From Oculina patagonica (Eukaryota), in the NCBI RefSeq assembly GCF_052425735.1, contig NC_135768.1, positions 3,224,001 through 3,288,000 of the forward strand: a stretch of 64,000 bases of DNA, given 5' to 3'. Each line of letters starts with the position of its first letter. Position 1 is the stretch's first letter. The translations under genes were made by a program, and so were the position numbers. Shown one piece after another: positions 34,501-60,761 of the stretch. The notes under the pieces are model-generated. The model had not been told where the DNA came from, did not search any database, and saw only the letters and a program-made list of their open reading frames with translations.

Positions 34501-36767
34501 TTTCAGTTGAGACGAATCAGTGGAACTGGCAAGGCCAAAGCACGAGTGGACAAGTATGAAAACAAAAGGTATCAGCAGAAACAATAATTTTTATAACCTA
34601 TTTTTCACTTTTCCCTGCTCTACAGTAATTTAATATTTGAGGGCCACAAGTTTATAATTGTTTTTCACTTTTTACATGCTTCCCTCTTTGAAAAAGACTC
34701 CACTTCACTTCAAAATGAATGCTGGCAAGAAAAAAAACCCTTCCACCCCTACAAATATAATTTATGGCCGTTATGGGTACTGATCAGTTATTACCTGGTG
34801 ATGGTAATCACAGTCACTAAACAAATGTTGTCAGTGTGGAAATTTTGCCGGTCGGTCATCAGACATCTTTAAAGCTGAGAATGATTTGCGCATGCGAAGG
34901 TAGCTGTCTGTTTTATCAGGCTAGAACAGTGCCCTGTATGATTGTTTTTGTGTCATTTATGATGGCTAGTGCAGTTACTTACATTTTGTTTTTTCCTTGC
35001 TAACTTATTCACCAGTGTTGTGATGTCGTACAATCCTGCTGCTGACTCAACAATCGCCACACCAGGCAAGAAGAGAAAGAGATCTGAGGAAAATGGAGAA
35101 GATGCAACACCAGGTGACAGCGTCCCAGTTACACCGAGCACACCAGCCACAGAGGAAGGTCTGTGGCCTCGCACACTGTGCTTTAATTTTGAAACAAACT
35201 AATGTTGCTGCCAAAAGGCTTAGGTTGCAAAGCGTCTGTGGTTGAGACCAGGTTAAGCTTCGAAATAATAATAAAAAAAATAATGATATTAATTAAATAA
35301 AAAAGTCAAAGATTTTTCTCTGTTCCAGGCATTTGGTTAGATTGGGAGCAGTGGGAAAAACGGGATTAGCAGGACACAGCCCTACCCTTAATAATTTTTG
35401 CTTATTTTTTTTTTTTTGAAGCCCTGAATTTTTTTTTTTCAGGCTTCTTTATTCCAATTGCTTAAATTGGCAATTCACTGCAATGATCATTTATCACTTT
35501 CATATCCATCCGCAGTTCATATATGAATTATTTCATATACATTACATCATTTCACTCCTCTTACGGGTAAAATATGAACTCACAATTGACCTCGCTCCCA
35601 ATGTGTGGCTTCAATAGCTCAGTTGGTAGAGCATCGCACCGGTATCACGGAGGTCACGGGTTCGAATCCCGTTGAGGCCCTGAATTGTTTTTCAGGCTTC
35701 TTTATTCCAATTGCTTAAATTGGGAATTCCCTGCGATGATCATTTATCACTTTCTTACTGTTTTTTGCGTAGCTTCCCAACTAGCCAAACAACTGGAACA
35801 GGCAACCTTCGTCTAAAAGACTATGCTTGGTTTACATTAGAGTCATTGTTGAAATCATCAAATTGCAGACAGTTATAAGTGACGCTTATCATACTGCAAT
35901 GGCCTTATATGCCTACTGGCAGCCGCACGATGAGTCATGATGATGATGATGACCATACTGCAGATAAACTTAGTTTTGGCTGCTTTCTTATGTCTGTGGC
36001 CTTGTAAGAACAACCCTAGAAGGGTGCAAAGAAATTACTGGTGTGTCCTTTGCTTTTAGCAAAATACTCTGTTTCCACGAGGAAAAGCGGGTTTAAAATA
36101 GAACAAGTAGAATTACTTTTGTTCATGCTGGAGAGATGGTCTCTTTTTGTATTCACTATTCTCTTGTTTCTATCTTTACCTGCGTAACTGTTCAAATTTT
36201 TATCATCTATAATTTTAGATGAAAGAGAAACGCCAGCAAAGAAATCCAAGAAGGAAAAGAAGAAAAAGAAGAAGAAGGACGAGGAAGTTGAACAATCTGA
36301 CGAGGAACAAATGGACACTTCTGCTGTGGTAAGGAATAGACCTTATCATTGTTTTCAACACCGTGATGTTTTTGCTTGTCACGCAATCTTTCGTGAGATT
36401 ACGTGACCCAGACTGGGCTGGCTGTAGCTGTACCAAAATTCATCTCCAAAAAAGAAACCCAAAATTTGGCAAATATGCACATGTGTGGATTTTTTGTCAC
36501 AATAACTAATTACGTAAGTAGAAAAACACTAGTAACAAAAATCTGAGAAAAAGATAGAGATAGATTTAAATCGACAAAGTTGGTAAAAATAGGCTTTTTT
36601 TTCAAAAATCAAAATGTGTCGTCCGTTTATCAACGTGATTAGTTGTGAAAAAGTTAGTAAAAAAATAAGAGACATTCTTATTTATTTTCCTGCAGACTCC
36701 AAAAAGTGAAGAAAAGAAGAAAAAGAAAAAGAAGAAGAAGGAAAAGAAGGACGAAGACTCGGATTAA
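25848..36767 (+). CDS. NOP58: Nucleolar protein 58, ~531 aa. Exons 25848-25892, 26025-26101, 26586-26638, 26968-27092, 27813-27900, 28204-28252, 28449-28648, 29266-29366, 30342-30386, 31368-31494, 31852-31924, 32630-32720, 33831-33965, 34507-34568, 35016-35158, 36219-36328, 36696-36767
   Basis: [15 protein letters not shown] start; [50 protein letters not shown]; [26 protein letters not shown]; KKE/D-rich tail. All GT-AG, 1596 nt in frame. AATAAA at ~36802. Confidence 0.96.
26161..26491. mobile_element. TTAA MITE in NOP58 intron 2
   Basis: ttaa|agctgatttccagtccgtactgcgca ... tgcgcagtacggactgtaattcatct|ttaa. Confidence 0.75.
29400..29856. mobile_element. MITE (taccttat..catgaaattt termini)
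   Basis: Inverted termini; same family as 16664-17092. Confidence 0.75.
29920..30234 (-). mobile_element. Decayed 3' end of an RTE-clade LINE
   Basis: Minus-strand translation ...[28 protein letters not shown]...[12 protein letters not shown] resembles the RTE ORF2 C-terminus, with stop codons. Confidence 0.65.
30680..31221 (+). mobile_element. Penelope-like pseudo-LTR fragment carrying a hammerhead motif
   Basis: ATTGG box (~30780), TATAAAA (~30815), then a hammerhead (30886-30936) and a short ATG-initiated ORF. Target deletion rather than TSD. Confidence 0.55.
30886..30936 (+). ncRNA. Minimal type I hammerhead ribozyme motif
   Basis: agcaa-CTGACGA-a-gggaacga/tcgtttcc (stem II)-GAAA-ccgg-TC-ttgct. 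Stem I agcaa/ttgct, palindromic stem III ACCGGT, GUC cleavage triplet. Confidence 0.8.
31504..31576. repeat. (CAT)n microsatellite
   Basis: Direct observation; a shorter one lies at ~26889-26915. Confidence 0.9.
32147..32558. mobile_element. Tc1-like MITE, TA TSD
   Basis: ta|cagaaaaaattgcgtgtaagaaccta ... taggttcttacacgcgggtttttactg|ta. Confidence 0.7.
34199..34462. mobile_element. CAGGG-terminated MITE
   Basis: cagggcatgaaatt ... aatttcgtgcccta; flanks ctgta / ccgta. Confidence 0.6.
35417..35754 (+). mobile_element. Terminally redundant retroelement with an internal tRNA-like module (35607-35680)
   Basis: ~80-nt direct repeats at both ends; cloverleaf with A/B boxes in the middle. Confidence 0.7.
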
Positions 36768-38283
36768 CACAACAACTATAATTTCTGTTTTATTTGTTTG
36801 CAATAAATTCACACAACTTGTTTCTCTTTTCTTATTTTTGCTGCCATCCTTGACACAGTCGCCCTGCCTTTGCTCTTCTTTGACTAAAGTAGTGTTTCAG
36901 GTCCACAAAATAGCTGGGACTAAAAATTTCGGGGCAAAAAACTTACAGAAATAAATAGAGGCAAACGTTCCTTACAGACACCCACACAGCGTGCAATGAA
37001 GTACATGTCCGATAGCCCGGGACTAGCCTGACGAGCAGCAAGAAAAATTTTTGGGATCACTTTCTTGGGGAGCTTGGAAGCCAGGCTTGATTTGGTAGCC
37101 GAGCCTTCTCACAATATGAGCTCATTTACAGACAACAGCGAAATTATTCAGGGAAAATTTTTGGGAAAATTTTCCATATTTATAAGGAGCTTTTGGGCTA
37201 GTGAAAATGACTTTCGGGCCAGTACGCCCCTGGCAGACTCGTTTCCAGTCGCTCCCGAAGCGGTTTCGACTAGAACGCATTCAGCTTTCCCCTCAATTAT
37301 TATAAAGCCCCGGAACCCTCGCCTCATTCCGCTCCAGTCTTTTATCCAAAAAATATACGAGGGGGGGGGGGGGGGGGGTGAAAACAATATGAAATAATAT
37401 TATTGGAGTGTATTTTATCGCCTTAAGGAGCAAATGAGTAGGGACTGGGAACGAGTTTGTGCCCCTGGTTACAGCTTGCCAAAAGGATCAGTTGGAAAAT
37501 TCAATTTCTTTGTACCCCGCCCACAGTTGACTCGATCCGAAAGATACTTCTCTACCTCTGTTATACGCACTCCTTCATAGTATAGGGTCTCTTCCCTGTC
37601 CCTTTTGTATCCCCTAAAAGAGGCTTCACTTTTCTTGTTTCTCGTTCCAGAGGGATTTTTTTTGAAGCCGCCATCTGATAGCGGCTTCAAAGACGAAAAT
37701 ACGGTGGGGGGGAGGGGAGGGGGGGAGAGAAAACGAAATAGGGAAAAAACTGGCGAGGAGGAAAGAAAACAATAGCGAAGCGCGCAAGTGACGTCATGAC
37801 TCCGACGAACAAACCGGAATTGCGAACGATTATCTTAAAACACTTTGTTTCTCCCTCAAACACTATTTTAAAATGAGAACTTCGCCCAGATTCGGCGTCT
37901 CCAATGAGTCTGCGCAAATCATTTCCGGCTCCGGTACATAACGCCATTCACTTGTGAAATTTATAACAGCGAACCAACAGGAAAATCACTGGTATTTAGG
38001 ACCATCTAAATATTTTGTTATAAGATTTTCTTGCCAAGTTACAGTTCTTTTCAAACGGAATTTTTCGTTTTATAAATGTGCAAAATATTTCGTGACAGTT
38101 GATCAGCGGTATCTGCCTTTCCGTCACGCAACAATCAATATGGTAATTTGTATGGCTTTTGTGTGCTCGCTTTCGTTTGCTTCAGTTCTCGTCTCAAGAG
38201 CCCGTCTCAAGAGGCAGTTCTGATTCACCACTCGAACGTAAAAGATTACGTTCCAGTCTTCCAAAAATTAGCAGCCCTCTAAA

Positions 38284-41200
38284 ATGATTACAACATGGCA
38301 TCAACTCGCTCCTTTTCTACGTCGAACTGCCGCCGTCTGCAATCCAAGAAATGTTTTTCCAGCCGCTAACTGCGTGTTGAGGAGCCGGCTGAACTCAAAT
38401 CAGAGGTAATTGACAATTATGAGCCATAAATTTCTCTATGTGCCGTGTACGATCTTTAATGAGCTCCGAGCAGAGATGCTCAAGTATCAAGTCGAGATAT
38501 TAGTTCCGGCTTGCGAATAATCCATACGATTTTCCTTTTTTTTTCAGAGTTTACACGAGTAGCTAGCGACTGCGTAACATTTGTTTACGAAATGAACCAT
38601 TTAAAATCAGTAGTCACACAACAGAATTTACGATTTTTGCGATCAGTATTAGGTAAATGTTGTAAGCGATCGAGGTTCAGTAGACCAGTTCCGAAATAGA
38701 TCAGGTGGGAACTCAACAATTTCTGAAAAAAATCCAATTGGTATTTGTAGAGGTGCGAGTTGCTGCACGGGTGTTTCCCGAGACTTACACATTTTTACAT
38801 GTATAATTTGAAGAAAAAAAACAGCCGCTTTTAAGCTTTTCTGTATATTTATTTCATAAATACAAGGCTTCATGATGGAATACAGAAACCAGAAATATTT
38901 CAGGGAAAAATTGGGCGTGTATTTTGGAAGAAAACAGCCAAAGTGGTTGCGTGACATTTCATCGATTGGCCAATCTTGGCTCTACCAGCGGAATAATCAT
39001 AAAACAAAAGAAATGACTCCTCCAAGCAACATATTGTGGTCTCTTTGTTTCTTCAACAAAGCCTTAAAGCTAAATTTGAATTTGTAATCGAGGGAGGGGA
39101 CTCTTTGGCCCCGAAATTTTTGTTTCGAGCTGGAACCTGGAACCTGGAATCTGAAATTTTGGAGCTGAAACGCCGAATTTCGTCACACTTTTCTGTTAGT
39201 CAGCAAAGCACGCGGACTAATTCTCGTCTTCCCGGGTGTAGGGACACGGACCATTATTTTTTCTAGCGGTGGGGGTGGGGGGACGATCTTTCTGGGCAAT
39301 AGATATTTCCTACATCTTCAGCCTTCAGGTGGTGCAACACTTTTTTTCGGCTTGCTTAATTTTTTCCTCCTGGCTCCCCTTGCACGATTTTCTTCAGCCG
39401 CCAGGAGCCATGGGCTCCGCGGCCGCTTTCTGTGCAGGATTTTTTTTTGAAAATTGCCCCCACCCCTTTAAAAAAGTAATGGTCCGTCCCTTCCGCGACC
39501 CTTATTACAAAATGAAAATGATATTTTAACATTTTCAATATTTTCTTCTGAAAGTGAAACTATAACCAATTTACTTTCTTTCTGTACAGTGCCTCGTTTA
39601 CGACTGAGAGGAAGGTAAGATTGCTTGCTTGGTTCAGACTAAACTAGAAGCGATTACATTTACGCGCGCATATGTCGTCTTTCTTTTCTCTGGCAATATA
39701 TTTTTTTTTGGAGGGCGAGGTTAGTCAATTTTCTGGGCAAGATATTCTTCAGGTTGTACAAGATTTTTATTTTTTCCCCTCGTGGCTCCTCTTGCACGAT
39801 TTTTTCAGCCGTTTTTTGTAAGGAAATTTTTTTTGGGAAATTGCATTTGATAGTTGCAAAGTTGACTGCTTACTGCCTCGCGTACCTCAAGAAAATTGAA
39901 GCTTTTGTGATATCTCGTAGCACATTCTCTAAACTATGTGCAACAGATTTGATTGCGTGACCAACCACACCCCACGTGACCAGAATTTTCAAAGAAATTG
40001 AGGGCCTCTTCATATGATCCCGGTTGACCGGGCTGGCCCAGTTACCGAGATCTCGGCTCACTCCTATTTTCTTTGTAAGATTTTTGATGTGTTCATATGA
40101 GAAGGCGGGCCAGCCCGTTTACCGATATCTCGGTTTCTGCAAACGAGATATCGGCAACCGGGAAGAAAATTTCCCCATATGAACACTCCAGCCCGGCCGC
40201 CGGGACGCAACTTTTTTTGAAAAAATAGCTTCCCTTTCGTAACTGGGCGGTCAAAATGGCATAATTTTGCCTTGTATCTATTTCCACTTTAGAAATATGC
40301 GAATTAGCTCTATAAGTAAAGTTACAAGGGTCGATAAAGCTACGATAGTCGCAAAAGATACAACTTTATGGGCCTCTTCACATGAGCCCGGTTTACGGGC
40401 TGTCTCAGTTACCAGGACAGATTTTGACCTCTGTTCATATGGAAAATTTTAGCCCGGTTGACGGGGATAAAATTCAAGAAACGAAGGCAAAATGGCGACA
40501 CATAAAGTTGCATCTTTCGCGACTATCGTAGCTTTATTGACCCTTGTAACTTTATTAATAAAGCTAATTCGCATATTTCTGAAGTGGAAATAGATACAAG
40601 GCAAAATTAAACCATTTGGACCACCCAGTTACGAAAGGGAAGCTATTTTCTCAAAAAAAGTTGCGTCCCGGCGACCGGGCTGGAGCGTTCATATGGGAAA
40701 ATATTCTTCCCGGTTGTCGAGATCTCGGTTGCAGAAACCGAGATATCGGTAACCGGGCTGGCCCACCTTTTCATATGAACACATCCAAAATTTTACAAGA
40801 AAATAGGAGTGAACCAAGATCTCGGTAACTGGGCCAGCCCGGTCAACCGGGATCATATGAAGAGGCCCTATGTGTCGCAATTTTGGTTTCGTTTCTTGAA
40901 TGTTATCCCCATCAACCGGGCTAAAATTTTCCATATGAACAGACGTCAAGCTCTGTCCTGGTAACCGAGACAGCCCGTTTACCGGGCTCATGTGAAGAGG
41001 CCCTTAGAAGTCTGAATAATACTTATTTTTCTCGAGGGATAATTAGTATTGATCACATGAATAAACTGAACAGTAGAATGGTTTAACTAATAGCGGGTGG
41101 AACTTCAAACTATCGTCACAGCTTTTTTTTTGACACCTCTATCTGCTTGATAAATGATCACAAATTGATCAGAGACTTTTAGACAAGTGGTGGCTCCTAA

Positions 41201-44200
41201 AAGAGCCGTTGTTTATTGGCGGGAAAACCGCCTCACTTCATGTTGCTGGTGTACTTGGACACAGCCTTGGTTCCTTCACTGATAGCGTGTTTGGCGAGTT
41301 CACCGGGGAGAAGCAGCCTGACGGCGGTCTGAATCTCACGGGAACCGATCGTCATTCTCTTCGCGTACTTTGCCAGGCGCGAGGCTTCGTTCGCAATACG
41401 CTCAAAGATGTCGTTGACGAACGAATTCATGATGCCCATGGCTTTGCTAGAAATACCAGAGTCGGGATGAACTTGCTTCAATACTTTGTAAATAAAGTAT
41501 CCATAACTTCTTTGCTTCCTCTTTACCTTTCTTTTCGTCTTAACGCCAACAGCACTAGTACTCGGCTTCGCCTTGCTAGCTTTCTTCTCGCCTTTTTTCC
41601 CGGCTACTTTTGGCGCCATAATTCGACCTTGTAGTTTACAGGAGCCTAACTTGTTTCCTCAATCAACCGAAAGAAAGAATTTATAAATTATAATTTTGTT
41701 ACACTTCTTTGTAATTTATAGCATAATCTGGAGCATATCAAATTTCACAAGGATCGAAATTTTCGCTTTCCGATTGGTTATATACTTTCGATCACGCATT
41801 CCTAAAGGTCACAGGTCAGCGCCTAAGTTTTGATTGGCGGATTTCGATCCCTTTCCACTGTAAAGAATTTCAGGTGTTTGCACGTTTGAACGACGAATCA
41901 AACGATGAAATAAGAGTTTGTACAATTCTCGACAAAAATTTATTCAAATAAGGGAAAATAATACTTGCAGACACCGAGAATGCTCATTTCCTACACTGAA
42001 CACGAGTGCAGTGGGGGAAAAAATGCCACTTTTTGGCAAAATCTTGTTGAAGTTGAAGCAGTCGAATTGTTTCAGAAGGCAGTCAGATATTCGCCTTTGC
42101 CATCACTGGTATTTCTTCCCCTACTGTTGCTGGTGTATCACGACAATGAAAACAAAAGAACCGGCATTATTTCGTTCAAAAAATTGAACAAGGAAATTGA
42201 AGACATTTTCCATACCCTGTTTGACAGCCGCTGTCTGGTCCGTCACGCAACGCCTCTCCGCTGTTGCGTGACAGCCCAAATCAGTTGCAGGGCGGCCCAG
42301 AGAAGGTTTCTGTGTTTTGACCCTCATTTTCCAGTTCTGGTAACTCTCTTGTGACGGAGCGAAGGTCAAACTGGACTGGCGCTTTTCGGGGTGCAAAATT
42401 CTTAGGGATGTACCATGATGTAGGGGGGGGGGGGGGCGGGGGCCGGGGGGGAGGAGAATTTTTTTTCTGCATTGGTAATTGCAAGTATTATATTACTATT
42501 ACAACTTTCTGCAAGATGTTTGTAATTTTTTGTACAATCCATGTTTCCAGGTGGGGCTTGCTTGAATTTTTTTTCCGTGCTTACTTGTCATAGTGCACCA
42601 GTTTTTTCTCCTAATTTTCTTCTACCAGAATTTGTTAGTAATTGCCGAATCCCCCAGCCCCCTAAAAAAATGCTTCGTTTCTTATTGAAACTAGAGAACG
42701 TTTTTTTTGTTTATTTCATTTCATCCAAGTCACACATTCCACTTGTCATTTTAAAACCGCTTTTCTTCGTATGTCATTTCCTTTTTTCATAGAACGGTTC
42801 TGTTCTAGACCGTTTGAATGCCGGTGACGTACTTGTTGGTGATGGAGGGATGACCTTCTGTTTGGAGAAGCGTGGATATGTAAAAGCAGGACCTTATAGC
42901 CCTGAGTGTACAGTGGAAAGTCCGGAGGCTGGTAAGAATTAGCTCAATTGGTATTTGCTCCATACGGCGGTTTCATTGCTAGCTCTGATTGGTTCACTGT
43001 GATGTTTAGGCGCGTTGCGATTGGTCAGCTAGATGCGACGAGGCTGGTGATGATGATGGTCTGGGACCGAGTAGCGATGCTCTCACAACTTGCAAAGCGA
43101 TCAATTCACAGATTTAATTCAACAGGCAATCTTTTCCCGCGAAATGGAAGCTGCTATGTCGTGGAATCACTTATTATAAAGGAGTTCAATTCTCTTAACT
43201 AAAAATCTAAAAGCAGCTGTTTAAATCCGAAAATTTCGTCATCGTCGTGTAGTTTTAAGAACGCAGAATTTTGTGATACCGTGCTACTTTTCAGTGCTGA
43301 AATGCAAATGTTTGTACCACGATTTTCAACTGGCCCACATGGGGATTGTTAATGAAGTAAAACGAAGAAAGACCAAGTCAACAAACAACTTCGAAACAAT
43401 AGAGCAAGAACAATAGCTCCGACTAGCGCGGGAATATTCATCGCCACGTTTTCATTACCATTCCCGTGATGGTTTTATTTCATAACAAACACCACATATT
43501 GACACCAAGAACCTTTCCGGAGAAATTTTCACTGCTTTAAAGACAAAACTTAGAAAGTCTTTTTTATTACTACATATATAAAAAAATCGAACTCTCTCAC
43601 TGGTCCCATGTTGTTATTGTTTTGGCAAGTTCACAAAGAAAGGAGCTGCTCATGCGCCTTAGAGACATCTGCTGACTACCGCCCCGATGATTGCTTTGCA
43701 AGTTGTGAGAGCATCGCTCAGATTTCATATAAGAGAATGTATGGGAAGTTGCTTCCCCCCCCCCCCCCCCCGTGCCCTCTTATTCATGCTCAGTTAAAAT
43801 AAGATATGGAATATTATTGCTCAGCGGTCTAATAAGCCAAGCTGGAACGGCTTGGCTTGGGGTCACAGTGTTGCATGACCCACGCGAATTTTTTGTCAGG
43901 GTGGGTGGGTGGGCCGATCCTTCCTTCACTGCTCCGCTGGCTAAAACTAAGTACGAAAGGAGTGTTGTTGTGCACCAACTTATTATTTATAGCGTTTCTA
44001 CGCCCTCGTGTAGACGGTACCTCGTGGGATGTGACATTTTCACGTGTTTTATTTTCGCAAATCATTACGAGTATTATGAATAGAATTTAGAAAACCGCTT
44101 GTTGTTTTGGCTCATTGCTTAGACTGTAATTTTTCATTTCAGTCCGCCAGGTTCATCGAGAATTTCTTCGAGCAGGAGCAGACATCATTCAAGCTTTTAC

Positions 44201-47200
44201 GTTTTCCATGGATGATAACGTTATTGACGAGCAGGTATTTGAAGATGAATTTTTTCAACAATGACACGAGCATGGGACAATAAGTCTATTTACAAAACCA
44301 TTCTTGAATCTATCTGAGTTTATTTCTTCTTTATTTCTTATTTTGAGTTTATTTCTGGGTATGACAGACTGTCACGTACCAACTCGCCCAGGGTGAACGA
44401 TAAGTAAAATACGAGGTTGACTGTAGTATAGCCTGCGTGGCCGGCGTTCATAGCGTCATTGCAGGCCTCCCTCTTCCTCCTTCTCCTTCTTCCTTTGAAC
44501 GCCGGCCACGCAGGCTAACTGTAGTTCTCTCTTTAAATCCGTTGTAGCTTCAAGGTTGAGAATTGTCGAATAAAAAAACGCTTGTTCCGCTAACAGCTCC
44601 TAATGGCTTCATTTTCTGTTCCTCTCGTTGACAGAACGAAGAAATTAACCAGGCCGCGTGCGACTTGGCTAAGGGCGTGGCTCAAGAGGGAGGGGTGTAC
44701 TCTGCAGGCTCTATCTGCCAAACAGCAAAACTTTACACGCAGGGAGTTGGAAAGGAACAAATACAGAAACGGTTCGAGCAACAGATCGAGATATTTCTCA
44801 GGAATGATTTGGATTTACTGATTGCTGAGGTAAGCTAAGGACAATTTTATAAAAAAAGAACCTTTATACGTTTGAATCACTTTTATATCATTTGTTTTCT
44901 CTCGTTTTCGCCCCTTTACCATATTTCCCTTTGAAGCATGTGGGTATAAAGGTCACATTTTGTCATTAAAGAGATTATTTACGTTCTTCTTCAACGGCAA
45001 ACGGCAAAATCTCAGCTTACCGTTGATTTTGTGAATGTTTCTTCAATAAATCCTTAGTGAAAAGCATTTAAAACATTTGAACGTCACAAACGCGAAACTT
45101 TTTCACCTTGGAACGGCAGCTGCAGGATTTAAGCCTTTTGCAGGAAAACGCACAAACGCAAAGCCTAATCACTCTGTTGCATTATGGAGGGATATTTAGT
45201 AAAAAACTTGTGCACTGTACTTGCAAATAAGGCTTGTGTTTTTTTCCATTAAAAAACTCTCTAGATAATTAAAAAACGCCAACTCTAGTGAAATTGTATC
45301 TTTCTCTGCAAAAGCGGGGTACAGATAATTTTTATGTTTTAAGTAGTCGAATAAATCGAACGGGGGTCCACCTCTGCTTATACAATGAGTAGTATTGCTG
45401 TATTTACTCACCCCCCCCCCCCTCCCCTTAGTTCTTTGAGTACGGAGAGGAAGCTGAATGGGTGGTGGAGGTGATGAAGAGCACAGGGAAACCAACTGCT
45501 ATTACGATGAGTATTGGTCCTGCTGGGGACAGTAACAACGTGCCGACAGGAGAATGTGCTTTGAAACTGGCGAGGGCAGGTAATTTTATCTTTCTATTGC
45601 TTTCCCGTCAACCCACCAGCGCGTATTGCTTTATCTGCTGTCTACCGCCTGACTGCTTTATAGATGTTGATTGCTCGATTTGAAACGAACCCATTAAAAC
45701 GCTGTGTAAAAGATGTCAAACAACAGGGCCGTACCTAGGATTGTTTGTCTGTGGGGGCAAACTCCGCTAATCAAACACTATGTTAGAAATTTAGTTTTCC
45801 TGGCAGGGGCAACTGCCCCCCCCCCCCCCCCCCCCCGCTAGGTACGGATCTGAATATTAATTAAAAGAGAACACTACCAAGTGGAGATTACAATTGTTAG
45901 AGCAGTTTTCAATTGAGTGACGTGAAACCAAAACCAAAGTTATCACTCTTAGCCAATCACAAAGAACACAGACAACCCAGTGAACTAATCAAAACTCGAA
46001 GCAAATACATGTAGCCGGCACGAAGCGCGGGAAAACGTGCGCGAGCGAGTCACGATTGGTTTTGGTTTTACTCCTGATTGGCTGAGAAAGTGGCGCGAGA
46101 TTTTTTAGCCAATCACTAAACGTAGTTATGCAAAACCAAAGCAAACGCAATTAACTTTCGACACTCAAGTGAAAACCGCTCTATGCACCAATCACTGCAA
46201 CTATTACCTCCTATTGTTTACGTAGCATTGCAATGCGCATCCTTAAGGTCATTGCCCCGAAATGGAACTGAACATAGATTTTTAACCAACTTTTGCCTCT
46301 AGTTGATTACCTTAAGAAGACATAAATTTTGAAATAAAAAAATAGGGTCACATTCGTGTAGAAGCAGGAAGACCTTGTACATACCATTTAATTCCTTAAA
46401 AATTCCCGTGTAAGTACTAGCACAGTACACGTCTCCAGTGATAGTTTCTTTTTCAAACAAAGAAATTGATCTGTTTTCATTTGACAGAAAGAATTTGATC
46501 GCTTCACTCAAATTATAAGAAAAAAAGATAGGTCACCCGCATAGAAAAAAGCAGCTACTTTGTTTATGTGCGCGCGTTAACAATCTCGCCCCCAGAGGCC
46601 CGCGATCCTTCTGGTCTGCGCCAGTTTCCCGGTAGGTACGTTATGTATATCAAGTAAGTAGAGTATATGGTAAATCAAGCTGGCACGGTTGGTTAAATAA
46701 TATATTGGGGACATAATAGTTCCCCATACATAACGTACCTACCAGTTTCCCGACCGCTGGTCAAGGGCAACGCAAAATTTCAAACCCCCAAAAATCCTTC
46801 GATCATCCCCGTCATTGACAAGTCGGAGTACCCCCCTGGGTTCGGGTTATGGGTTTTGGGTCATCCACGTCACTTGAAATTCCGAGTACCCCCTTAGGGT
46901 CACGGATCAAAACAGCTGCTTGTTCCACTAACTAAATATTCTTTTCTTTCCTCGTCAGGTGCTGACATCATTGGAGTGAACTGCAAGTTTGATCCTGCCA
47001 CTTCAATGGAAGCTCTTCGCTTAATGAAAGAAGCAATGGACAAAGAAGGACATCACCCTCATCTGATGCTACAGCCTGTCGGTTACCACACACCAGACGC
47101 TGGAAGGACTGGGTTCCAGAGTTTGCCTGAGTTACCTTTTGGTAATATTTCGCTTCATTCTGTGTTAGCTGTCTGTAACAGGTCGTAACGCGCGCTCTGA

Positions 47201-49950
47201 TTGGCCAGTTGGGTTGGTATTATAACTTGCGTTCTGATTGATCGTCTGAGTATTTCAATTATCTGTAGTCTCACTGGACATATCTGAGATTTGCCTCGAA
47301 ACATTCGGGCAGCATCAAAGAAACATTCGGGAAGCTTCCAAGAAAACTTTCATTTTGTTTGCTGCTTCTCAATTCCTTGTTCCAATTCACTCACACGATA
47401 CGCTTATTTTTATTCTTTTTCTTGTAGCTTTGGAGCCTCGTACACTTACTCGATGGGACGTTCATAAGTACGCTCGGCGGGCCTATGACATGGGAGTGAG
47501 GTATATCGGAGGCTGCTGTGGCTTTGAACCATACCACATCCGGGCTATTGCAGAGGAGGTATGAGAATACCTTATTATAGGAAATTAACGCTTGTGTTAA
47601 TTAAGGTATTTGAAATTAACGCGACTTAAATTAACGCGAATTGAAGAAAAATTACTTCCCAATAAAGGAAATTAACGCGAAAGAGGGGGTAAAATTTCAA
47701 AATGAAGGAAATTAACGCGACGTACACAACTGGTACAAGTTTATTTCAACACTTGCAGACGAAAAATCTTAAACGCAAACAATGTTCGTGGTACTTTTCC
47801 CACTTTGAGCGTTCTTCGCAGTATCAATGATAGTGGCAGATAAAACAATGCTTTTTCCTTGGAGTCAAGAACTTCTGGACTGCAACGAGAAATTGGGGCC
47901 AAAATAATGGAAATTAACGTCATGGAAATTAACGCTCCACTAAATTAACGGTGCGGAAATTAACGTTAACTAAAATTAACGCGACTTAAATTAACGCGAA
48001 TGTTTAAAATTCGCGTTAATTTCATGACGCAGGTCTACCAAGTCTGTACCAAAGACGTCTACAAAACATTGCCATTCTAATGTATAAAGTAAAACACGGA
48101 CTTGTGCCCACTTATATAACAGAAATATTTAATACAGCCCCGAAACGATATAATCTGAGGAACGCTGATTTTAATATTCCACGTTTTCGCACAGTACATT
48201 ATGGAAAACATTCTTTACGATATTTCGGGCCTTATCTATGGAGCAAACTAGACCACAGTGATAGAGAAAAACATAATGTCACGAGTTTTAAAAACAGTAT
48301 TGGGAGAAAAGACCTCACCCGTCTTATACAAACTGAGTGTAAATGTGACATATGCAGCTAGCCGATATACATTTTTAAATTTTTAATTTTTAACTCTTAA
48401 CTGCAATTTTTATCTTTCACCTACTTTTATGATAAAATTTTATATTCTATTGTAATTTATTTATTTATTAATCTATGTAGTACGATTCTTCAGTTTTTCT
48501 TCTTCTTAGAATTTAAGTGTAAATATTTTAACTTTAAATAGCTTAGATATATAATAATGTAAATAGTGTCCACAATTAGTTTTTTTAAGCTAAATACTTC
48601 AGACACTTTAATAAAGTATTTCATTCATTCACTACACTCAATTGAAAACTGCTCTATCAGGAAATAAATTGGTTTTACGGCTGATGTTAGGAGTGTCAGC
48701 ATTTCGTGAGTAGAGTATTGGAACCTGGCGAATCTTTCAATGTTAGCATTCTCCATTTGTTCAAAGAATTTCGTTGTTGAAAAAGGGCTCTACTAATTTT
48801 GTCTTGAAAGAGAAGCGGTTAAAATAATTATCTTTAATCTTGTCGTGTCTGCCAGTTAAGATTCTCTTAGTAAGTAGCTAGTGGGAAATTGAAGATATCG
48901 GTACGCTTTACAAAAGAAATACTCAGTATACTATAATGTATTATTATCTAATGTATTCTAATTTATCTAATCTATTTGTCATCAGCTTGTCCTGGGGCGT
49001 GGTTTTCTTCCTGCAGCAAGTCAAAAACATGAACTGTATAAATTATAATGTATTCAAATTTATTTGTCTTTAGCTTGCACCGGAGCGTGGTTTTCTTCCA
49101 GAAGCAAGTAAAAAACACGAACCCTGGGGAGAATCGTTAAAACATCACGCAAAGGACTGGATGAGACGCAGGTAAGGAGTCTTAAATGACAGAGAAGACA
49201 TTTTTTTATTTTGTCAACATTCAACTTGTTGAGTTTCTATAGAGAGAAAAGAGAGATTTTTCCAAGCAATTTTCCAATGTTATGTCACTGTGCGTTTGCT
49301 TTGCATTTTGCTCTTCGCACCTGCTCTAACCAATAGAAGACATGGTATTATAGCTTTGCGTTAAGCCACGTTTCGCGCTTGGTAACGGATACAAACATGC
49401 TACTGACTACCTGGTTTTGTTTAATATTTGGCCTGTAAGCCACGTACAGAAATATTTCCTGCCGCTGGGGGATCCACGAGTTTGTTGAGCCAATGATACA
49501 CGGTTCAAAATTTGTTGAGCAGCAAATGTTTCGACTGCTTTTCAACACATGTTGAACTGTGTATCATGTGATGTTGAATGTTAAAATATGCCATTCAACA
49601 TGTTAAACGTTGTTGAACGGAATGTTAAACCGTGTATCATTGGCTTTAAAGGGAGGATTTAAGTGCAAACGACAAAAATGTGACATCCGTATAAAGGCGG
49701 CGGCCATGCTGGTAATTGAATTCACTTTTTATCTCAAAGGCTGATTGATTGTGTTGACTAAAATTGCAACTCTCTTGTCCTCCAATATGGTTTATCGTCA
49801 AAACTTTATGTTAAAGTTCAATGACGGAAACTAATAAAGGGTTAATGTATTTTTGTACGCAGGGCAAATCGAGCTTACTGGGAGAACCTGGAGCCTGCTT
49901 CTGGTCGTCCTTATTCCTCCGCGTTTAGCAAGTTTGACGGACCTGCTTGA
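38284..49950 (+). CDS. BHMT: Betaine-homocysteine S-methyltransferase-like protein A, ~406 aa. Exons 38284-38405, 39590-39614, 42793-42931, 44143-44234, 44635-44829, 45432-45579, 46959-47141, 47428-47558, 49074-49171, 49863-49950
   Basis: [26 protein letters not shown], Zn ligands GVNC and [36 protein letters not shown]. Exons 3-10 are high confidence. Exons 1-2 are inferred from splice signals and exact phase fit (2 then 0). Confidence 0.88.
40002..41003. mobile_element. GGGCC-terminated (Harbinger-like) MITE with an inverted copy of the same family nested inside (40370-40868, TSD tat)
   Basis: Four gggcctcttca/tgaagaggccc termini; inner copy flanked by tat. Confidence 0.8.
41192..41207 (-). 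terminator. Histone mRNA 3' stem-loop
   Basis: Minus strand aac-GGCTCT-TTTA-GGAGCC-acca, 25 nt after the H2B stop codon. Confidence 0.85.
41233..41619 (-). CDS. H2B: Histone H2B (divergent variant), 128 aa, intronless
   Basis: [57 protein letters not shown] (~41715) and CCAAT boxes (~41775, ~41835) upstream on the minus strand. Confidence 0.95.
45900..46181. mobile_element. 281-bp CCAAT-rich MITE, copy 2 (opposite orientation)
   Basis: Reverse complement of 23740-24020. Confidence 0.85.
47568..48025. mobile_element. MITE with aaattaacgcg internal repeats; right end disrupted by a LINE
   Basis: taccttattataggaaattaacgc ... gcgttaatttc. Confidence 0.6.
48030..48631 (+). mobile_element. 5'-truncated CR1/L2-group LINE (ORF2 C-terminus + 3' UTR)
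   Basis: [43 protein letters not shown]; ends aataaa + (cattc/attc) short tandem tail. Confidence 0.75.
48986..49048 (+). pseudogene. Partial tandem duplicate of BHMT-A exon 9 with its own acceptor
   Basis: cag|[20 protein letters not shown] versus the true exon [18 protein letters not shown]. Upstream intron sequence is also duplicated. Confidence 0.75.
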
Positions 49951-52807: not shown

Positions 52808-55800
52808 TCATTGTTGTTGGCCCAGTCCTCCCGGTCCACTGAATGAAGGGCAAAATGGACGACCGCTGGCTGGTTTTAGATTCTCCCAGTAGGCTCGATT
52901 AGCTCTAAAAAAGGAAATCAAACAAGTGTTACAGTTAACAAGGCAAGCAATAAACGGTTTAAAGTATTTGTTATTTGCAGAAAAGCGAATGAATGACTTC
53001 TTATTGTGAACAAACCTCTGAAATTGAAGCAGTTTTGACTAAGTATCGGCTGCTACCCTCGGTGGAACAGTGTTCACTATTCATGCATAAAACTATTTGA
53101 AATCTGCTATTTTTCCAAGCAATGATTAAACAGCAACTTTATTCTAAGTTTGAAAATGTGACCAAATATGCTTTCCCCTCAATGTCGAGGAAGGAAGTTG
53201 CGACCATCTGAGTAAGCGCCTGGAACTGTTCCGTGAGATTTTTTTTTTGACGAACTTGAGAGATACTGCAAGATGATTTTTTCTTTGACCATAGTGAGTC
53301 AACTCACTGTGCTTTGACCATCAGAATGAGGGCTAACGGACCTCCCCCCAGTCTCACCTTGCTCGGACTTCAGCTACCGAGTGGTGTTTGAGTGCCTCAC
53401 CCCAGGGACTATGCTTGTCGCTCGCGGGTGGAAATCTGCCTCGCTCTGGGGCAAGCTGAAAATAAAAAAACATTTCTCGTTCTCAAAAACAAAAGCAGAT
53501 GCATGAAAGCTAGACGAGTTATTGCTGCCACTAACATGTCATGTAAGCATTGGAATTTGGTTGAAGACATTCTCGAGCCGGTTGTGTTTGTACTAAAACA
53601 ATTAGACTAATTGCCCTCTTTTTCTATGAGCGATAGTGAACTCTGATGCGCCTCATTGATTATATAATATTCGCTCATAAAAAAAACTCGGGCTCGTAGT
53701 CCAATACCGTAGAATTCCGGTTATAAGCCCTGGGCTTATACAACTTCGTAAGGGGTTTTGGATGGGCTTATAAGCGGAGGGGCTTATATCCGGGAGGGCT
53801 TATATTAAAGTGGAATAAAAAAACCGTTTCGAAACGAGCCATGGGAGTGTTGATCGAAATACGTTTTTAGGTTAAGACCACATAATAAAGCAACATTTAG
53901 CCCTGTTCAGTATCGTCATTCAGTAGAGGGGGGCTTTTATCCGGGGGGGGGGTTTATAACCGGATGTATTTTTTTGTTTTAAGGTAGATGGGCCTATAAC
54001 CGGGGGGGCTTATAAGCGGAGGGGCTTATAACCGGAATTTTACGGTATTTAATTAGCAGTTCTACCTCCTCTGCGACAGCCCGGATGTGGTATGGTTCAA
54101 AACCACAGCAGCCGCCGATATATCTGACTCCCATTTCATAGGCCCGCCGAGCGTACTTATGAACATCCCAGCGAGTTAGTGTACGAGGCTCCAGGGCTAA
54201 ACAAGCGAATAATAAATACAATATCAATAGAATGCCTGCTTCTGTCGAGGGCCTTCCCGAAGATCTTTGAAGGCGCTCCAAACACTTCAGGAAGTGCTTC
54301 GCCAAAGTACTTTCACGAGTACTTCTAATTTCTCTTCTAAAATCGGGGAATTCGGGTAAAATAAAGTCATTTATATATAGCTTTTCTTTTCTCACATTGT
54401 TTCGAGATTACATACATTTCTTAAATTTGTCAGTTAGGCGTGAGAGACTTGAGCAGACGTGAGATCCACACAGCGGTCAAACGCAGCGTGCGTGCGCAGT
54501 TCATGTGTAATTGCCGCCAAAATTTTCCATACAAAGTCATAAATTTTCCGTAAACTTTTGCTTTAAAGCCAAAAGTTAACGCCGTCCCTGGAAAGTTAAG
54601 GTCTATACGCCGCTTATGGATTGGAAATTTGATAATTCATCTCCACTGAGTGTCCCAGCTTGAACTGTTCTTTCACCGTACATTCTTTAACAATTTCTTG
54701 CAAAAGTTTGCCTACTTTCGAGTCAAAAGTTCGAGGCGGCAAAGACCGGATGTGACGTCAATTTTTGCGTTTGACCGCTGTGAACGTGAGATCGAAGTTT
54801 CGACCCGCAGGCGCCAAGAGAGGTACAGCGGAACCTCGATTTAACGAAGTGCCAAGGGACTGATGAAATTTGTTCTTTATTTCGAGGGTTCGTTATATTG
54901 AAAACCTCGATATAACGAATTTGCGGAAAAACAACCAAAATGTTCGTTATATCGAGGTATAGTGAAGAAATTATTCAACATGACACGAGCGTGGGACAAA
55001 GAAAAAATCTGAGTCCCCGACGGGAATCGAACCCATGGCCTCCCAGATACCGGTTGGGCGCTCTAACCAAATGAGCTACGAGAGACTCGTTGTGAGCTGG
55101 GCCATTTACTAGGTTGATATGTGACACGCGTCCTGCATACTGCTAGGATCAGCAATGTCGAAATCATCAAATGTGTAGTAAATAATAAAGATGGAAAATT
55201 TCAAGCTCGGTGATAAATAGTGAAGAAATTATTCAACATCACAACGAGTCTCTCGTAGCTCAGTTGGTTAGAGCGCCCAACCGGTATCTGGGAGGCCATG
55301 GGTTCGATTCCCGTCGGGGACTCAGATTTTTTCTTTGTCCCACGCTCGTGTCATGTTGAATAATTTCTTCTCTATTTATCACCGAGCTAGAAATTTTCCA
55401 TCTTTATTATTTACTATCGAGGTATAGTTAATCAATTTTTAAGAATTTTCATCCTTGTTGGTCTGTTCGGCATTCATCATCTTAAAATCGAGAAACATTT
55501 TACGTTTGGGCTTCTGGATTGTGTTCGTTATATCGAGCCCTGTTCTATACATTTTGCGGTAACTTTGGCCGGGCTGAAGAATATCGTTCGTTAAACCGAG
55601 GACTTCGTTAAAAAGAGGTTCCACTGTAGCAGGTATGGTAAGGAATTTTATCGTCTGATATTGCACGTCCAAGATTATACGCGGTTCGCGCTTCGAACAC
55701 GAACTCGAACTCCCCTTCTCCTTTCCCTTTAAACGCCAGCCACGCAGGCTAACCACAATTAGTTTTGGCCAATGAAAAAAACAGTGAATAACTACAACGG

Positions 55801-58800
55801 TTGACATTTAGCATGCAAGGGCTGGGACTTCACAGCTATCGACTTAGGGCTTCCAGTCTAGTTGTTACAGACAAATACGTCGTATGCTAAGAAGCAGTTA
55901 CTAACATAGCTGAGTACCCCCCTGGGACACCCCCCCCCCCCAGCTTAACCCGTGGGATGCGGCTGTGGGGGGAAAGGGAACTCACCGAGCGGGTTTTCTG
56001 GTAAATATTGAAATCCATAAATCCCGGTATCTGGAGTATGGTAACAAACTGGTTGTACCATCAGATGAGGTTTGAGTCCTTCTTTGTCTAACGCCTCTTT
56101 CATTAAACCAATGGTCTGTAAACTCTGATCCGGATCAAAGTTACAGTTGACACCAATGATATCAGCTCCTTTATGATAAAACAAACAAACGTCAACACAT
56201 GAGCTTGGCCTTGCCTCTTGGAACAATCAATGCCTTCTTACAACGTAACGTAAGGTAACCTGCGTTGCAAACGAACTAAACCCAGGATTTTTCTACACGT
56301 CCGGCTGCAACGCAGTCAAAACGTAAGGCAATGTGGCCTCATTTTGCGTCATGTGACGTAACGAAACGTGTTTTCGTTTCTAGTTCCGATTGGATCGTTA
56401 TTGCATTAGAGCGGTTTTCACTTGAGTGTCGAAAGTAAATTGCGTTTGCTTTGGTTTTGCATTACTACGCTTAGTGATTGGCTTAAAAATCTCGCGCCAA
56501 TTTCTTAGCCAATCAGAACTAAAACCAAAACCAATCGTGACTCGCTCGCGCACGTTTTCCCGCGCTTCGTGCCAGCTACATGTATTTGCTTCGAGTTTTG
56601 ATTGGTTCACTGGATTGTCTGTGTCCTCTGTGATTGGCCGGAGTAATTACTTTGGTTTTGGTTTTACGACACTCAATTGAAAACTGCTCTATATGTGTTA
56701 AAATGTATCTATACTAGGGATAGTGTACACTAAATCTGCCCCCGCTGTTAATCCGTTTGTTTTTTCAGCTCAGCCGTTACGTAAGTCAATTCTTTCGCTT
56801 GATATTTTGGCTCTTCTGTTTGTTAAATTGATTGAAAATCAATTGGCCTAACTGCATGCGCAGAATACCCTGCCACTCCGTCCACACCTCAGTCACCAAA
56901 ATATCACATGGTTTTTGGCTTTCTCTTCTTGCGATTCATGTGATTTAAATCAAACCTTCAGGATGAACTGTTGAAGCCAAGTGAATACGCAAAACAAAGG
57001 AAATTAGGCAAAAATTCAGAAAGATAAATGATCACGTAAATTTAATTACAAGAACGCCACTGTAACCGCGTTACAACAATTTGCCGTGTTTTGCTGTATT
57101 GAGGGATCTCAGTGAAGATAAACTTTAGCAACACCAAATTGTTTTTAAAACTAGTATTTAAGCCCAACTGTTTTACAGCGCGACGCGTCATACCGTGGCC
57201 ACCCAACAAACCTTTTTTTATGTATACAAGTGTTTTATCATGATATCCGCGACTATATGTTTGACGAACACGCCGCCTTGCAAAGTTGAATACGATCAAA
57301 TGGATACTTGTTACATCGTATTTATTAACAAAACGCAGTGAAAACGTAAAATATTACCAGATGACACTTGTAAAAAACTTTGTTGGGTGGCCACGGTAAG
57401 GCGCGTCGTACTGTAAAATGTACACCTAATTGCAAAAAGGTTGTCATAGAAAAAGGAAAAAAGAAAAAGTCAAATAGGAATAAATTAAGCGCATGCATGA
57501 AATTTATTCGGACAAATGGCCTCAAAATGCCTCAAAATACGAATAAATCAATTTATCTTGTTACAGCAAAACATTTTGGACTAAAAGTGTGCGATAAAAA
57601 CTCGCAATTTTTCTGTAATTGCAATAAGTCATGAAACTACGCTAATTAATTCCTATTTACCTTTTTTCTTTTTTCTATTTTTCTATGACAACGTTATTGC
57701 AATTAGGTGTATCTATATTATAGCTATCAGGGTCACAAGCAGATCGCCCGGCCAAGAGTGTACTACGTTTCGCTCCGTTTTCATAATAACGGTTGGGAGA
57801 AATTGGCCTATTCACGCTCACAAATGCTGATAGGGTTAAACAAAACAGTATATAAACACTTGAAAAATCTCGTTCCCAAGGCTTTTCCCTTAGTAATCTG
57901 GCCTGGGAACGAAACTGACACTATTTTATTGATTTTCATGGACTCGGCATCGTTCTAAAAGCACTCACAATTTTTTTAGAATATAAGTATAAAATCCAAA
58001 ATCCGCCATGCAGAAACGCTGCTACGTCACATGTAACCCAGCCCTCTCATTAGAATAAGGTGCGTCTGTCTCCCGAATTGTTTCATGATCTGCTTCCACT
58101 TTAAGTAAGCTACAACGAAATGCCTCACAGTACCTGCCCTTGCTAGTCTCACGGCACATTCTCCAGGTGGCACACCTTTCTTATCACCCTGTGGCCCAAT
58201 ACACATTGTAACAGCTGTTGGTTTGCCTGTGGACTTCAACACTTCCGCTACCCATTCAGCTTCCTCTACGTGTGCAAAGAACTGAGGGGAGAGGAGAGAG
58301 TGAGTGCCTGAGAAATTTAATTTTTATGGGGGTAGGGGTAAGTATAGCAAAGTGTCCGTGGTGTCTTCAGCAGACAAGGTAATCGTAATCGAACAAAAAT
58401 AATTGCTTTGAAAGAACAGAGAAAATTCACAGGACTCTCAACTGTTAGAGTTAGCAAGGACACAGGAATGACGTATACAAAAAAACTTTCTTCCGCTCTC
58501 ATTGTTTGTCACTTTCTTGGCAATCAGATCAGTGTGAACAATTACTTAGTTTTTTGAAGCATTAATTCCTCCGTAATAAAATATGAACCAAAAAGCAGAT
58601 TCCAAAACTGAAATAGGACTCAACTCACCTCAGCAATAATCAAATCAACATTATTCTGGAGGAAAATCTCAATTTGTTCTCTAAACTTTTTCGTCACAGC
58701 GTCTTTTCCAGCACCTTGTAAATACAGGGAAGCAGTCTGACAGATGGATCCAGCAAAATACACCCCTCCCTCCTGAGCCACGCCCTTTGCAAGGTCACAT

Positions 58801-58823
58801 GCCGCCTGGTTTATTTTTACGGT
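52808..58823 (-). CDS. BHMT: BHMT-like protein B, 3' six exons: 58823-58629, 58281-58134, 56168-55986, 54196-54066, 53455-53358, 52904-52808. 5' exons not found in the window
   Basis: Exon sizes 195/148/183/131/98 identical to copy [47 protein letters not shown]. No stops or frameshifts. Confidence 0.88.
53707..54045. mobile_element. Tc1-like MITE (ccgta..tacgg ends, ggggcttata repeats)
   Basis: ta|ccgtagaattccggttataagccc ... gggcttataaccggaattttacgg|ta. Confidence 0.75.
54826..55626. mobile_element. Tc1-like MITE hosting a nested tRNA-cored element
   Basis: ta|cagcggaacctc ... gaggttccactg|ta. Confidence 0.75.
54964..55414. mobile_element. Inverted-dimer retroelement with two tRNA-like modules (55013-55090 minus, 55246-55323 plus)
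   Basis: 14-bp duplication tatcgaggtatagt on the flanks; two near-perfect inverted copies. A degraded relative lies at ~7365-7495. Confidence 0.75.
56409..56689. mobile_element. 281-bp CCAAT-rich MITE, copy 4
   Basis: Near-identical to 23740-24020. Confidence 0.85.
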
Positions 58824-60761
58824 CTGAAAGAGAGTTCTGTCGGCATTGATCTCAAATAAAAGTCACTAAATAACCATTAACACTTGAAAAATATAAAACG
58901 TAACAAACGAAAAAGCCAAAACCATGTGTTATAACATCATAAAATTAATGGAAAAAGCATTTACAGGGAAATAGCAAGCGGCTTGATTTCGAAAAAGCAC
59001 CCCTTTTGTGTACATGTACCCTTTATTGGAAAAAGATACCCCTTTCATATAACTATACCACATGACATTTTACTTAAAACAGGAAATCTTTCTTGCCATT
59101 TTTATGTAGCGCTTAATAAATTAAGACAACAGAGCCATAAGGTGTGTCTTTTTAAATATCTTAATGACAGATTTCCCGTCCCTTTCATATACCTAAACTT
59201 GTAAGAGCGAAGGCACAGATTTTTGAAGCAAACCTTGTCCACGGTCAAAAATAAAACCCTCCTTTATTTTTAATTTTTAAACAGGTTTAAGTGAGTTTTT
59301 AAAGGTTTCGGGGTTTATTTTTCAAAATACCGCCGACTTTCGGAAATATTTGAGAAAATCGATTTCGCACTATTGAAGGCTAAAAATAGCCGAATTAAAT
59401 AGCAAAATTAAGCATTCGCAAAAACGTTCTCGCGTTGTTGATAGAAGTTATATCATCGAGAATTAGAAACATATACTTAAAGTTGAAGAATAAATCAATG
59501 TTTTTATGCCTGTGTTTCGGTTTTAGATTATACTTTTCACAGCGAAAGTAACGCTCTTTGATGACAATTTTATAACTGCTTTAGTAAATACAGTTTCACC
59601 TCATAATAACAAGATTACTTTTCGATATGTGGCCATTCTTTAATCGGCTTCATTTTATGGCTATAAAATGCCCAAAGACTCTTCTTTATCTACATATAAA
59701 AATTGGTTCGGGTTTTTAAGCGAGCGCGTTTTAAAACGCCATCAAAATATGGGTAATTTAACTAAAATTTGAACTAATTTGCATATCACCGTTTTGATGA
59801 CATGTTACATGTAACAGCCGCATTCGCGTAAAAGCTGCAAACTCTGGTTTTCCTTAAATTTGTGCTTAACACTAAATTAAACTTGAAATCCTTTTCTATC
59901 CCTACTGAAAGGATCACTTACCTTTTATATTGCTGCGGTAGATACAGCAAAAGCGGCGAAAGGAGCGTTTGACTTATAAACAGTAGAGACTCACAGATGC
60001 CACATTTCATTCTCTACAAAAATTTACGATCTATAATTACATTTTCTTGAATCTGAACAAGATCATATTTTACGCAGCCATGAATTTCTTTTAATATCTT
60101 CGCGTACTTACCCGAAATTAGCTGCAAGGGACTAAAAGGCCAGTGTTACGATTTGTTTGAGTATTACGTGACGATTCAGATAAAGTTGTAACGCATGACC
60201 GGCAAATGGAATTTCAAGAATGTTTTGTTGTTGACGGGTAGTTTATTATTTTTATTTCTTTTTTTGGGAGTGAAAATATCTTTAAATAGTTAGAGCTATT
60301 TATATTTTTAAATTGCTATTATTTATATTTCTTATAAGTTTTCATTTTATTTTATAACTTTTTTTAAATTAGATTTTAGGTAAACCAGGCAGGGCCCCTA
60401 CGCTAGCCGCTGAACGTGCCACCCTCGATCAAGCTACAAGCCGTATTCAGTGCAGACGCGTGTGCGGATAGCTCACTATATTGATAATAAATTAGTAAAA
60501 TAAACTAAATCTCCCCGATAAACATTGAAAATTTCACATAAAAGCCAAAAAATCCGTTGCCCACGAACACTTCTGTCGCACAAAATTTGCGCACTACAAC
60601 ACCTGTGTAAACATCCAAATTAAATTATGAAATCTAATTATAAACTTACAGAAAATATCACGAAATTTTAATTTCGGAATTGAAGTATGTTTGGTTAAGT
60701 GTCAAATTTTAAGCATACAGAATTTATAGAAAACACCTTTGCATCCATACAACAAAAACCT

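Follow-up and report, generated by a model that had tools for sequence, protein, structure and literature searches.

A candidate mitochondrial targeting leader on a BHMT-family homocysteine methyltransferase of the coral Oculina patagonica

Is homocysteine remethylation by enzymes of the BHMT family confined to the cytosol in all animals? BHMT-type remethylation is regarded as a cytosolic step in animals; vertebrate BHMT is cytosolic, and BHMT2, an S-methylmethionine-homocysteine methyltransferase, is also cytosolic and has a short N-terminus. The question is raised by a gene, here called BHMT-A, on the forward strand of a 64,000-nucleotide stretch of the Oculina patagonica genome (NCBI RefSeq assembly GCF_052425735.1, contig NC_135768.1, positions 3,224,001 to 3,288,000), which is referred to below as the window and whose numbering is used throughout. 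A first-pass annotation of the window had proposed that two 5' exons provide the BHMT-A product with a mitochondrial targeting presequence. Based on the gene structure, public RNA contigs, coral orthologues and a comparison with known BHMTs, it is likely, with a probability that we put at about 0.7, that the N-terminal leader of BHMT-A is such a presequence. Although the gene model is in public databases, the interpretation of its N-terminus is new, as are the conservation of this N-terminus across stony corals and its apparent loss in Acropora.

Structure and transcription of the leader exons

BHMT-A consists of 10 exons encoding a product of 406 residues, as obtained by tblastn and splice-site reading (Table 1). 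The exons 3' of position 42931 were placed with the guide P0014, a BHMT-family protein of a coral, taken from public transcript assemblies. The first-pass annotation had given the two 5' exons, their in-frame splice into the first conserved exon and the resulting peptide correctly to the nucleotide. It had called these exons hidden, which they are not: the 406-residue product is 100% identical to a public O. patagonica model (P0161; KAL9957818.1 / XP_078345621.1, 'hypothetical protein ACROYT_G034766'), and both exons are already contained in the GenBank and RefSeq versions.

The coding stretch of exon 1 (122 nt) begins in the context taaaATGa, with an A at -3, and ends in phase 2 at the donor AG/GTAATT. 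The microexon has a polypyrimidine/AG acceptor (ttctgtacag/) and the donor AAG/GTAAGA, and the acceptor of the first conserved exon is ttttttcatag/. The codon immediately 5' of 42793 is TAG; therefore, the conserved exon requires an upstream coding exon and cannot begin a protein alone. In the observed 5' untranslated region (5' UTR), there is no ATG, and an in-frame TAG lies at 38269, 15 nt upstream of the start, so that the ATG at 38284 is the first of the observed transcript. The next in-frame ATG encodes M69, within the conserved GDGG region.

Another ATG, at 38295, opens an out-of-frame reading frame of 24 codons, to which the first-pass annotation had ascribed a possible role as a leaky-scanning sink. 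This ATG is present in Oculina and Pocillopora and absent in Desmophyllum. It arises because a codon ending in A precedes the conserved Trp5 (TGG) and is thus a by-product of that codon; since Asn codons never end in A, it must also be absent from the orthologues P0164 and P0290, in which residue 4 is Asn. A leaky-scanning role is not supported, and we see no reason to assign one.

Transcription of the leader exons was followed in Logan contigs of four runs, each from a different study (X1-X4), which we guess to be RNA runs, placed on 37500-43100. The junction 38405/39590 is found in three runs (X2, X3 and X4) and the junction 39614/42793 in all four, both with GT..AG borders; both splices expected from the first-pass annotation are therefore present in public-run contigs. 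No further joint into 42793 occurs in the contigs of these runs, and none of the candidate first exons listed between the histone H2B gene of intron 2 and 42793 is used in them, so that the contigs give no sign of the different first exon downstream of H2B that had been considered as a counter-possibility. The contigs reach 5' to 38192, which places the mRNA start near 38190, and only one 5' splice pattern is observed. In addition, exon 1 has a single occurrence in the O. patagonica genome, and BHMT-A alone among its many BHMT-like genes carries it. Because contigs that skip the introns could otherwise come only from a retrocopy, the joined form does not derive from a retrocopy in that genome.

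Table 1. Positions of BHMT-A exons and of the features nested in intron 2, in window numbering
Feature	Position	Strand	Remarks
BHMT-A 5' UTR, minimum extent	38192..38283	+	X2 contig 38192-38403, X3 contig 38203-38346; ATG/stop scan
Exon 1, coding part	38284..38405	+	residues 1-40 and 2 nt of codon 41; leader segment that is basic and free of acidic residues; LAPFL at residues 8-12
Microexon	39590..39614	+	25 nt; residues 41-49, SASFTTERK; phase 0 restored
First conserved BHMT exon	42793..42931	+	residues 50-95 and 1 nt; alignment with human BHMT starts at about its residue 10-11
Seven remaining coding exons	44143-44234, 44635-44829, 45432-45579, 46959-47141, 47428-47558, 49074-49171, 49863-49950 (stop included)	+	
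Histone H2B gene	41168..41619 (CDS 41233-41619; 3' stem-loop 41168-41212)	-	antisense in BHMT-A intron 2
Nested inverted-repeat element	40001..41006	.	in intron 2, outside the mRNA; arms of 303, 138 and 73 nt, 91-97% complementary

The enzyme, its leader and their conservation

The product of BHMT-A matches the homocysteine S-methyltransferase domain PF02574 over residues 63-346 with 154.9 bits against a cut-off of 22. Its residues 51-404 align to chain residues 11-372 of solved human BHMT (E 4.8e-142), and residue 10-11 of both the human and the rat enzyme matches coral residue 50-51; the solved vertebrate structures are human 1LT7/1LT8, 4M3P and 8D45 and rat 1UMY. The GDGG motif and the three Cys columns that are zinc ligands in BHMT are invariant. 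C249, C331 and C332, which are invariant in 18 sequences, align with the GVNC and GGCCG segments of human BHMT, in which the zinc-binding triad is C217, C299 and C300. The coral enzyme ends at about human residue 372-374 and is without the last ~32 residues of BHMT; in this shortened C-terminus it resembles BHMT2 of the same family, and the automatic RefSeq name of its orthologues in Pocillopora and Montipora is 'BHMT2-like'. Judged by its sequence, BHMT-A is an expressed gene for a zinc-type homocysteine S-methyltransferase of the BHMT family; betaine, the methyl donor of EC 2.1.1.5, is a candidate donor for it.

On the other hand, the N-terminus differs from that of the vertebrate enzymes. 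Whereas cytosolic BHMT has a short N-terminus of ~10 residues, 49-50 residues precede the aligned region in the coral enzyme, which thus has ~40 additional residues, encoded on two additional exons. The other BHMT-type models found with a complete N-terminus, from other corals, an anemone and vertebrates, have a short one, except for some fish, ray and brachiopod models. The longer N-termini of the latter are acidic and contain the canonical Met inside, and they were set aside as not presequence-like.

The leader comprises the 49 residues ahead of the conserved BHMT region, encoded by exon 1 and the microexon. Its residues 1-46 hold 5 Arg and no Asp or Glu, as the first-pass annotation had counted, and acidic residues begin with E47. 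If Asp and Glu were as frequent as in the mature part (0.146), 46 acid-free positions would be expected in the Oculina protein with a probability of 7e-4. Leader properties were computed on eight orthologues from robust corals: the leaders are 47-50 residues long and contain 6-9 Arg+Lys, 0-2 Asp+Glu and 16-27% Ser+Thr, and the first acidic residue stands at 46-48 in six of the eight. In all eight sequences, LxPFL or LFSFL occupies residues 8-12 and matches, as a pattern only, the TOM20-type phi-x-x-phi-phi motif. Similarly at the level of pattern matching only, processing-peptidase motifs with Arg at -2 or -3 are found as RLNS at 35 (Oculina and relatives), RSAS at 39 (Pocillopora) and RFYS at 23 (Montipora). 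The maximal 12-residue Kyte-Doolittle mean of the leaders stays below 1, which means that they lack the hydrophobic core of a signal peptide or membrane anchor.

The layout of exon 1, 25-nt microexon and conserved exon is also found in the Desmophyllum gene (P0270, on L011) and in the Pocillopora verrucosa gene (P0271, on L012), the latter with NOP58 upstream of it. The same N-terminal extension is borne by the transcript-derived open reading frames (ORFs) P0163, P0164, P0166, P0280 and P0290. Between Oculina and the others, leader identity is 35-67%, and that of the enzyme is 82-87%. The start codon, frame and leader length are kept, and an in-frame stop lies 6-30 nt upstream of the ATG in each species. 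The exon structure and its reading frame are supported as genuine, as is the N-terminal extension, and all three are expressed and conserved.

A further line of evidence comes from a search with the 46-residue first conserved exon among 1.84 billion representative proteins, which led to P0003, a 123-residue Desmophyllum pertusum model whose leader-like N-terminus runs directly into BHMT. On its contig (L001, MU826862.1), residues 4-123 are encoded without introns. The spliced BHMT-A cDNA matches L001:16554-17078 with 81% DNA identity, beginning 3 nt before the ATG, and the translated match extends to 17124; within L001:16554-17124, exons 1-5 are joined, codon 5 is a stop and a frameshift follows later. 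By these sequence features, the copy is a 5'-complete processed pseudogene of the Desmophyllum BHMT-A orthologue. This implies that a germ-line mRNA of Desmophyllum had exons 1-5 joined exactly as proposed for Oculina.

Proteins of 362 residues beginning with MTDTKKG were considered as a short cytosolic isoform and were rejected as an ORF-calling artefact, the frame of the contig being open from an upstream ATG. A leader-only query (residues 1-50 of P0164) against a 5.8-billion protein set returned the query alone, a result that is uninformative on distribution because too few 5-residue words are shared.

In the complex-coral clade, Montipora capricornis and M. foliosa have RefSeq models (401 residues) with a leader of 44 residues. 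Homology is recognisable in the part of this leader that corresponds to the microexon (SALFSTDSK); the part that corresponds to exon 1 is of different sequence and is again Arg-rich and acid-poor, with RFY/S as a classical Arg -3 pattern. Acropora proteins (P0165/P0298), on the other hand, begin with MDPKK. The Acropora-type transcripts L013-L015 map to L007 with exon 1 at 6763-6946, a microexon of 26 nt ending at 9531 (transcript block 9504-9531) and the conserved exon at 10047-10190; this orthologue is of the same gene lineage as Oculina BHMT-A and has the same exon layout. Its exon 1 contains in-frame stops and is non-coding, and the start ATG lies inside the microexon (MDPK), so that no leader is made. 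When the robust-coral and Montipora leaders were searched by tblastn in the 10 kb that precede the loci of Acropora type (L007, L008) and of Porites (L009), only chance-level matches were found. A weak match at L007:2102-2182 (E 0.17) was dropped, since the Acropora transcripts put the true exon 1 at L007:6763-6946. The leader appears to be ancestral to the stony corals, as represented by robust corals and Montipora, and to have been lost in Acropora, the direction of change being read from the Montipora gene models and the standard coral phylogeny.

Mitochondrial import and its alternatives

The computed presequence features all fit a mitochondrial matrix-targeting peptide and give in silico support for one, and they persist across orthologues despite sequence change, for example, between Montipora and the robust corals. 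The leader also lies outside the folded domain: in the AlphaFold2 model, residues 1-46 have predicted local distance difference test scores below 50 and no secondary structure, and the barrel begins near residue 50. The mechanism may be pictured as follows. The first 35-40 residues would form a cleavable matrix-targeting presequence, whose positive, acid-free segment with LxPFL would be recognised by the TOM/TIM23 import route. The matrix processing peptidase would then cut near R35-L36/N37. As BHMT homology begins at residue 50-51, a cut near 36-41 would leave ~10-13 residues before the conserved fold, which is about the tail length of cytosolic BHMT. Finally, the enzyme would remethylate homocysteine to methionine inside mitochondria. 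The oxidation of choline to betaine and the dehydrogenases that break down dimethylglycine and sarcosine are mitochondrial, and a mitochondrial BHMT-A would fit with both.

Several findings weigh against import. The maximal helical hydrophobic moment of the leaders (0.58-0.73) is not above that of shuffles of the same residues (p 0.17-0.54), and the motif matches are short patterns that may occur by chance. No helix is modelled in the leader by AlphaFold2. Acidic residues stand inside some leaders (Asp23 in Desmophyllum, Glu33 in P0290 and Glu11 in Montipora foliosa), the Montipora evidence consists of gene models only, and Acropora manages without any leader. Moreover, four of the five exon-1 variants seen in the RNA contigs (38300-38350) change a residue (H6R, A9S, R22G and N23Y, the fifth being silent), and one of them removes an Arg; the leader may be under relaxed constraint, or the runs (organism labels A and B) may stem from a sister taxon. 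Homocysteine is not known to be made in mammalian mitochondria, and the substrate would need a supply route.

Much of this evidence would also be expected if the extension were translated as a disordered tail without a targeting role, regulatory or neutral, on a cytosolic enzyme: the unstructured low-confidence segment, the ordinary amphipathicity, the fast evolution of the leader with mostly residue-changing variants, and the loss of the leader in Acropora with the gene kept. However, disordered tails are normally acid-rich, whereas acidic residues are here nearly excluded over ~46 positions in most orthologues and Arg is enriched. The frame, length and start codon are also kept across families with in-frame stops just upstream, and Montipora has kept the same character in a different sequence. 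A tail of this kind is therefore the less likely explanation, and we regard it as unlikely.

The leader could instead direct the enzyme to another compartment, such as the secretory pathway or the peroxisome, or give it two destinations. Ambiguous N-terminal signals commonly lead to dual targeting, and in one Pocillopora lineage the microexon contains an internal Met that gene callers picked as the start. The absence of a hydrophobic core argues against the secretory pathway, no pattern of the peroxisomal targeting signal type 2 (PTS2) is seen by eye, and a shorter functional isoform is unlikely in Oculina, where the next in-frame ATG (M69) falls inside the GDGG region and the RNA contigs show a single 5' splice pattern. 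We consider a different or dual destination improbable. That the 5' exons are an untranslated leader with an accidental long ORF and that the functional protein starts elsewhere, as the non-coding exon 1 of Acropora might suggest, is very improbable indeed. No ATG of the observed transcript precedes 38284, which has A at -3, and at least eight orthologues keep the ORF open at a constant length. Moreover, no in-frame ATG lies between 38284 and M69, and a stop codon stands directly before 42793.

If the leader does act as a mitochondrial presequence, BHMT-A would work in the same way as the one-carbon pairs SHMT1/SHMT2 and MTHFD1/MTHFD2, in each of which one paralogue with an N-terminal presequence acts in mitochondria; for BHMT-A, the localisation is predicted only. 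No homocysteine methyltransferase is known to belong to a compartment-specific paralogue pair of this type, and none was found in the searched literature. Full-text searches for BHMT with coral, mitochondria and targeting likewise returned no report of a presequence-bearing or mitochondrial BHMT. A mitochondrial paralogue would change the compartmentation of methyl-group, betaine and methionine fluxes in corals, and it would require homocysteine to reach the matrix by a supply route that is not known in animals. Corals hold very high betaine pools (PMC7240134), and two coral papers that treat BHMT say nothing of its location (PMC7240134, PMC5557254).

A broader proposal is that stony corals ancestrally remethylate homocysteine in mitochondria, beside betaine synthesis and the breakdown of dimethylglycine, and that Acropora moved the enzyme back to the cytosol by means of an untranslated exon 1 and a start in the microexon; to us this seems an even bet. 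The loss in Acropora against retention in Montipora and the robust corals offers a ready comparative test, and Montipora and Acropora would form a natural pair for the effect of a change of compartment.

Introns and neighbouring features

At 38549-38963, contigs of X1 (426 nt, depth 20) and of X2 fall entirely within intron 1; they may represent unspliced precursor, or a separate transcript or element. Two similar repeat fragments (39240-39480 and 39690-39840) flank the microexon. In X2 and X3, contigs connect 39274 with 39729 through 10-12 letters of other sequence, probably reflecting other copies of the flanking repeat.

The H2B gene nested in intron 2 has a 3' stem-loop that matches Rfam RF00032 with 30.5 bits, below the gathering score of 34, and is the sole Rfam match in 36500-43200. 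An H2B gene is nested in the same intron in Desmophyllum (L011:5053-5319, minus strand) and not in Pocillopora verrucosa, in which intron 2 measures ~325 bp. RNA contigs match the Oculina H2B gene only at its conserved core, 41244-41310, with variants, and probably come from other H2B copies. The inverted-repeat element at 40001-41006 is matched by many RNA contigs with depths of hundreds, also with variants, which implies that related copies are transcribed somewhere in the genome. Further downstream, a G-rich run at 42420-42450 shows contig depths of 4,000-33,000, most likely a poly-G sequencing artefact and not expression.

Upstream of BHMT-A, a segment of ~35 nt at 37770-37806 that includes TGACGTCA has matches to several contigs in each of the four runs, with depths of 150-210. 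The flanks of these contigs resemble neither the window nor each other, and the segment may belong to a repeated motif of promoter-like or mobile-element type. Finally, a second BHMT-like gene, BHMT-B, lies on the minus strand at 52838-58853, and further BHMT-like copies occur elsewhere in the genome. Up to the window end at 64000, BHMT-B has no match to the first two conserved exons, and its public model (P0168, 317 residues) begins with unrelated residues; BHMT-B may be truncated, or its 5' exons may lie outside the window.

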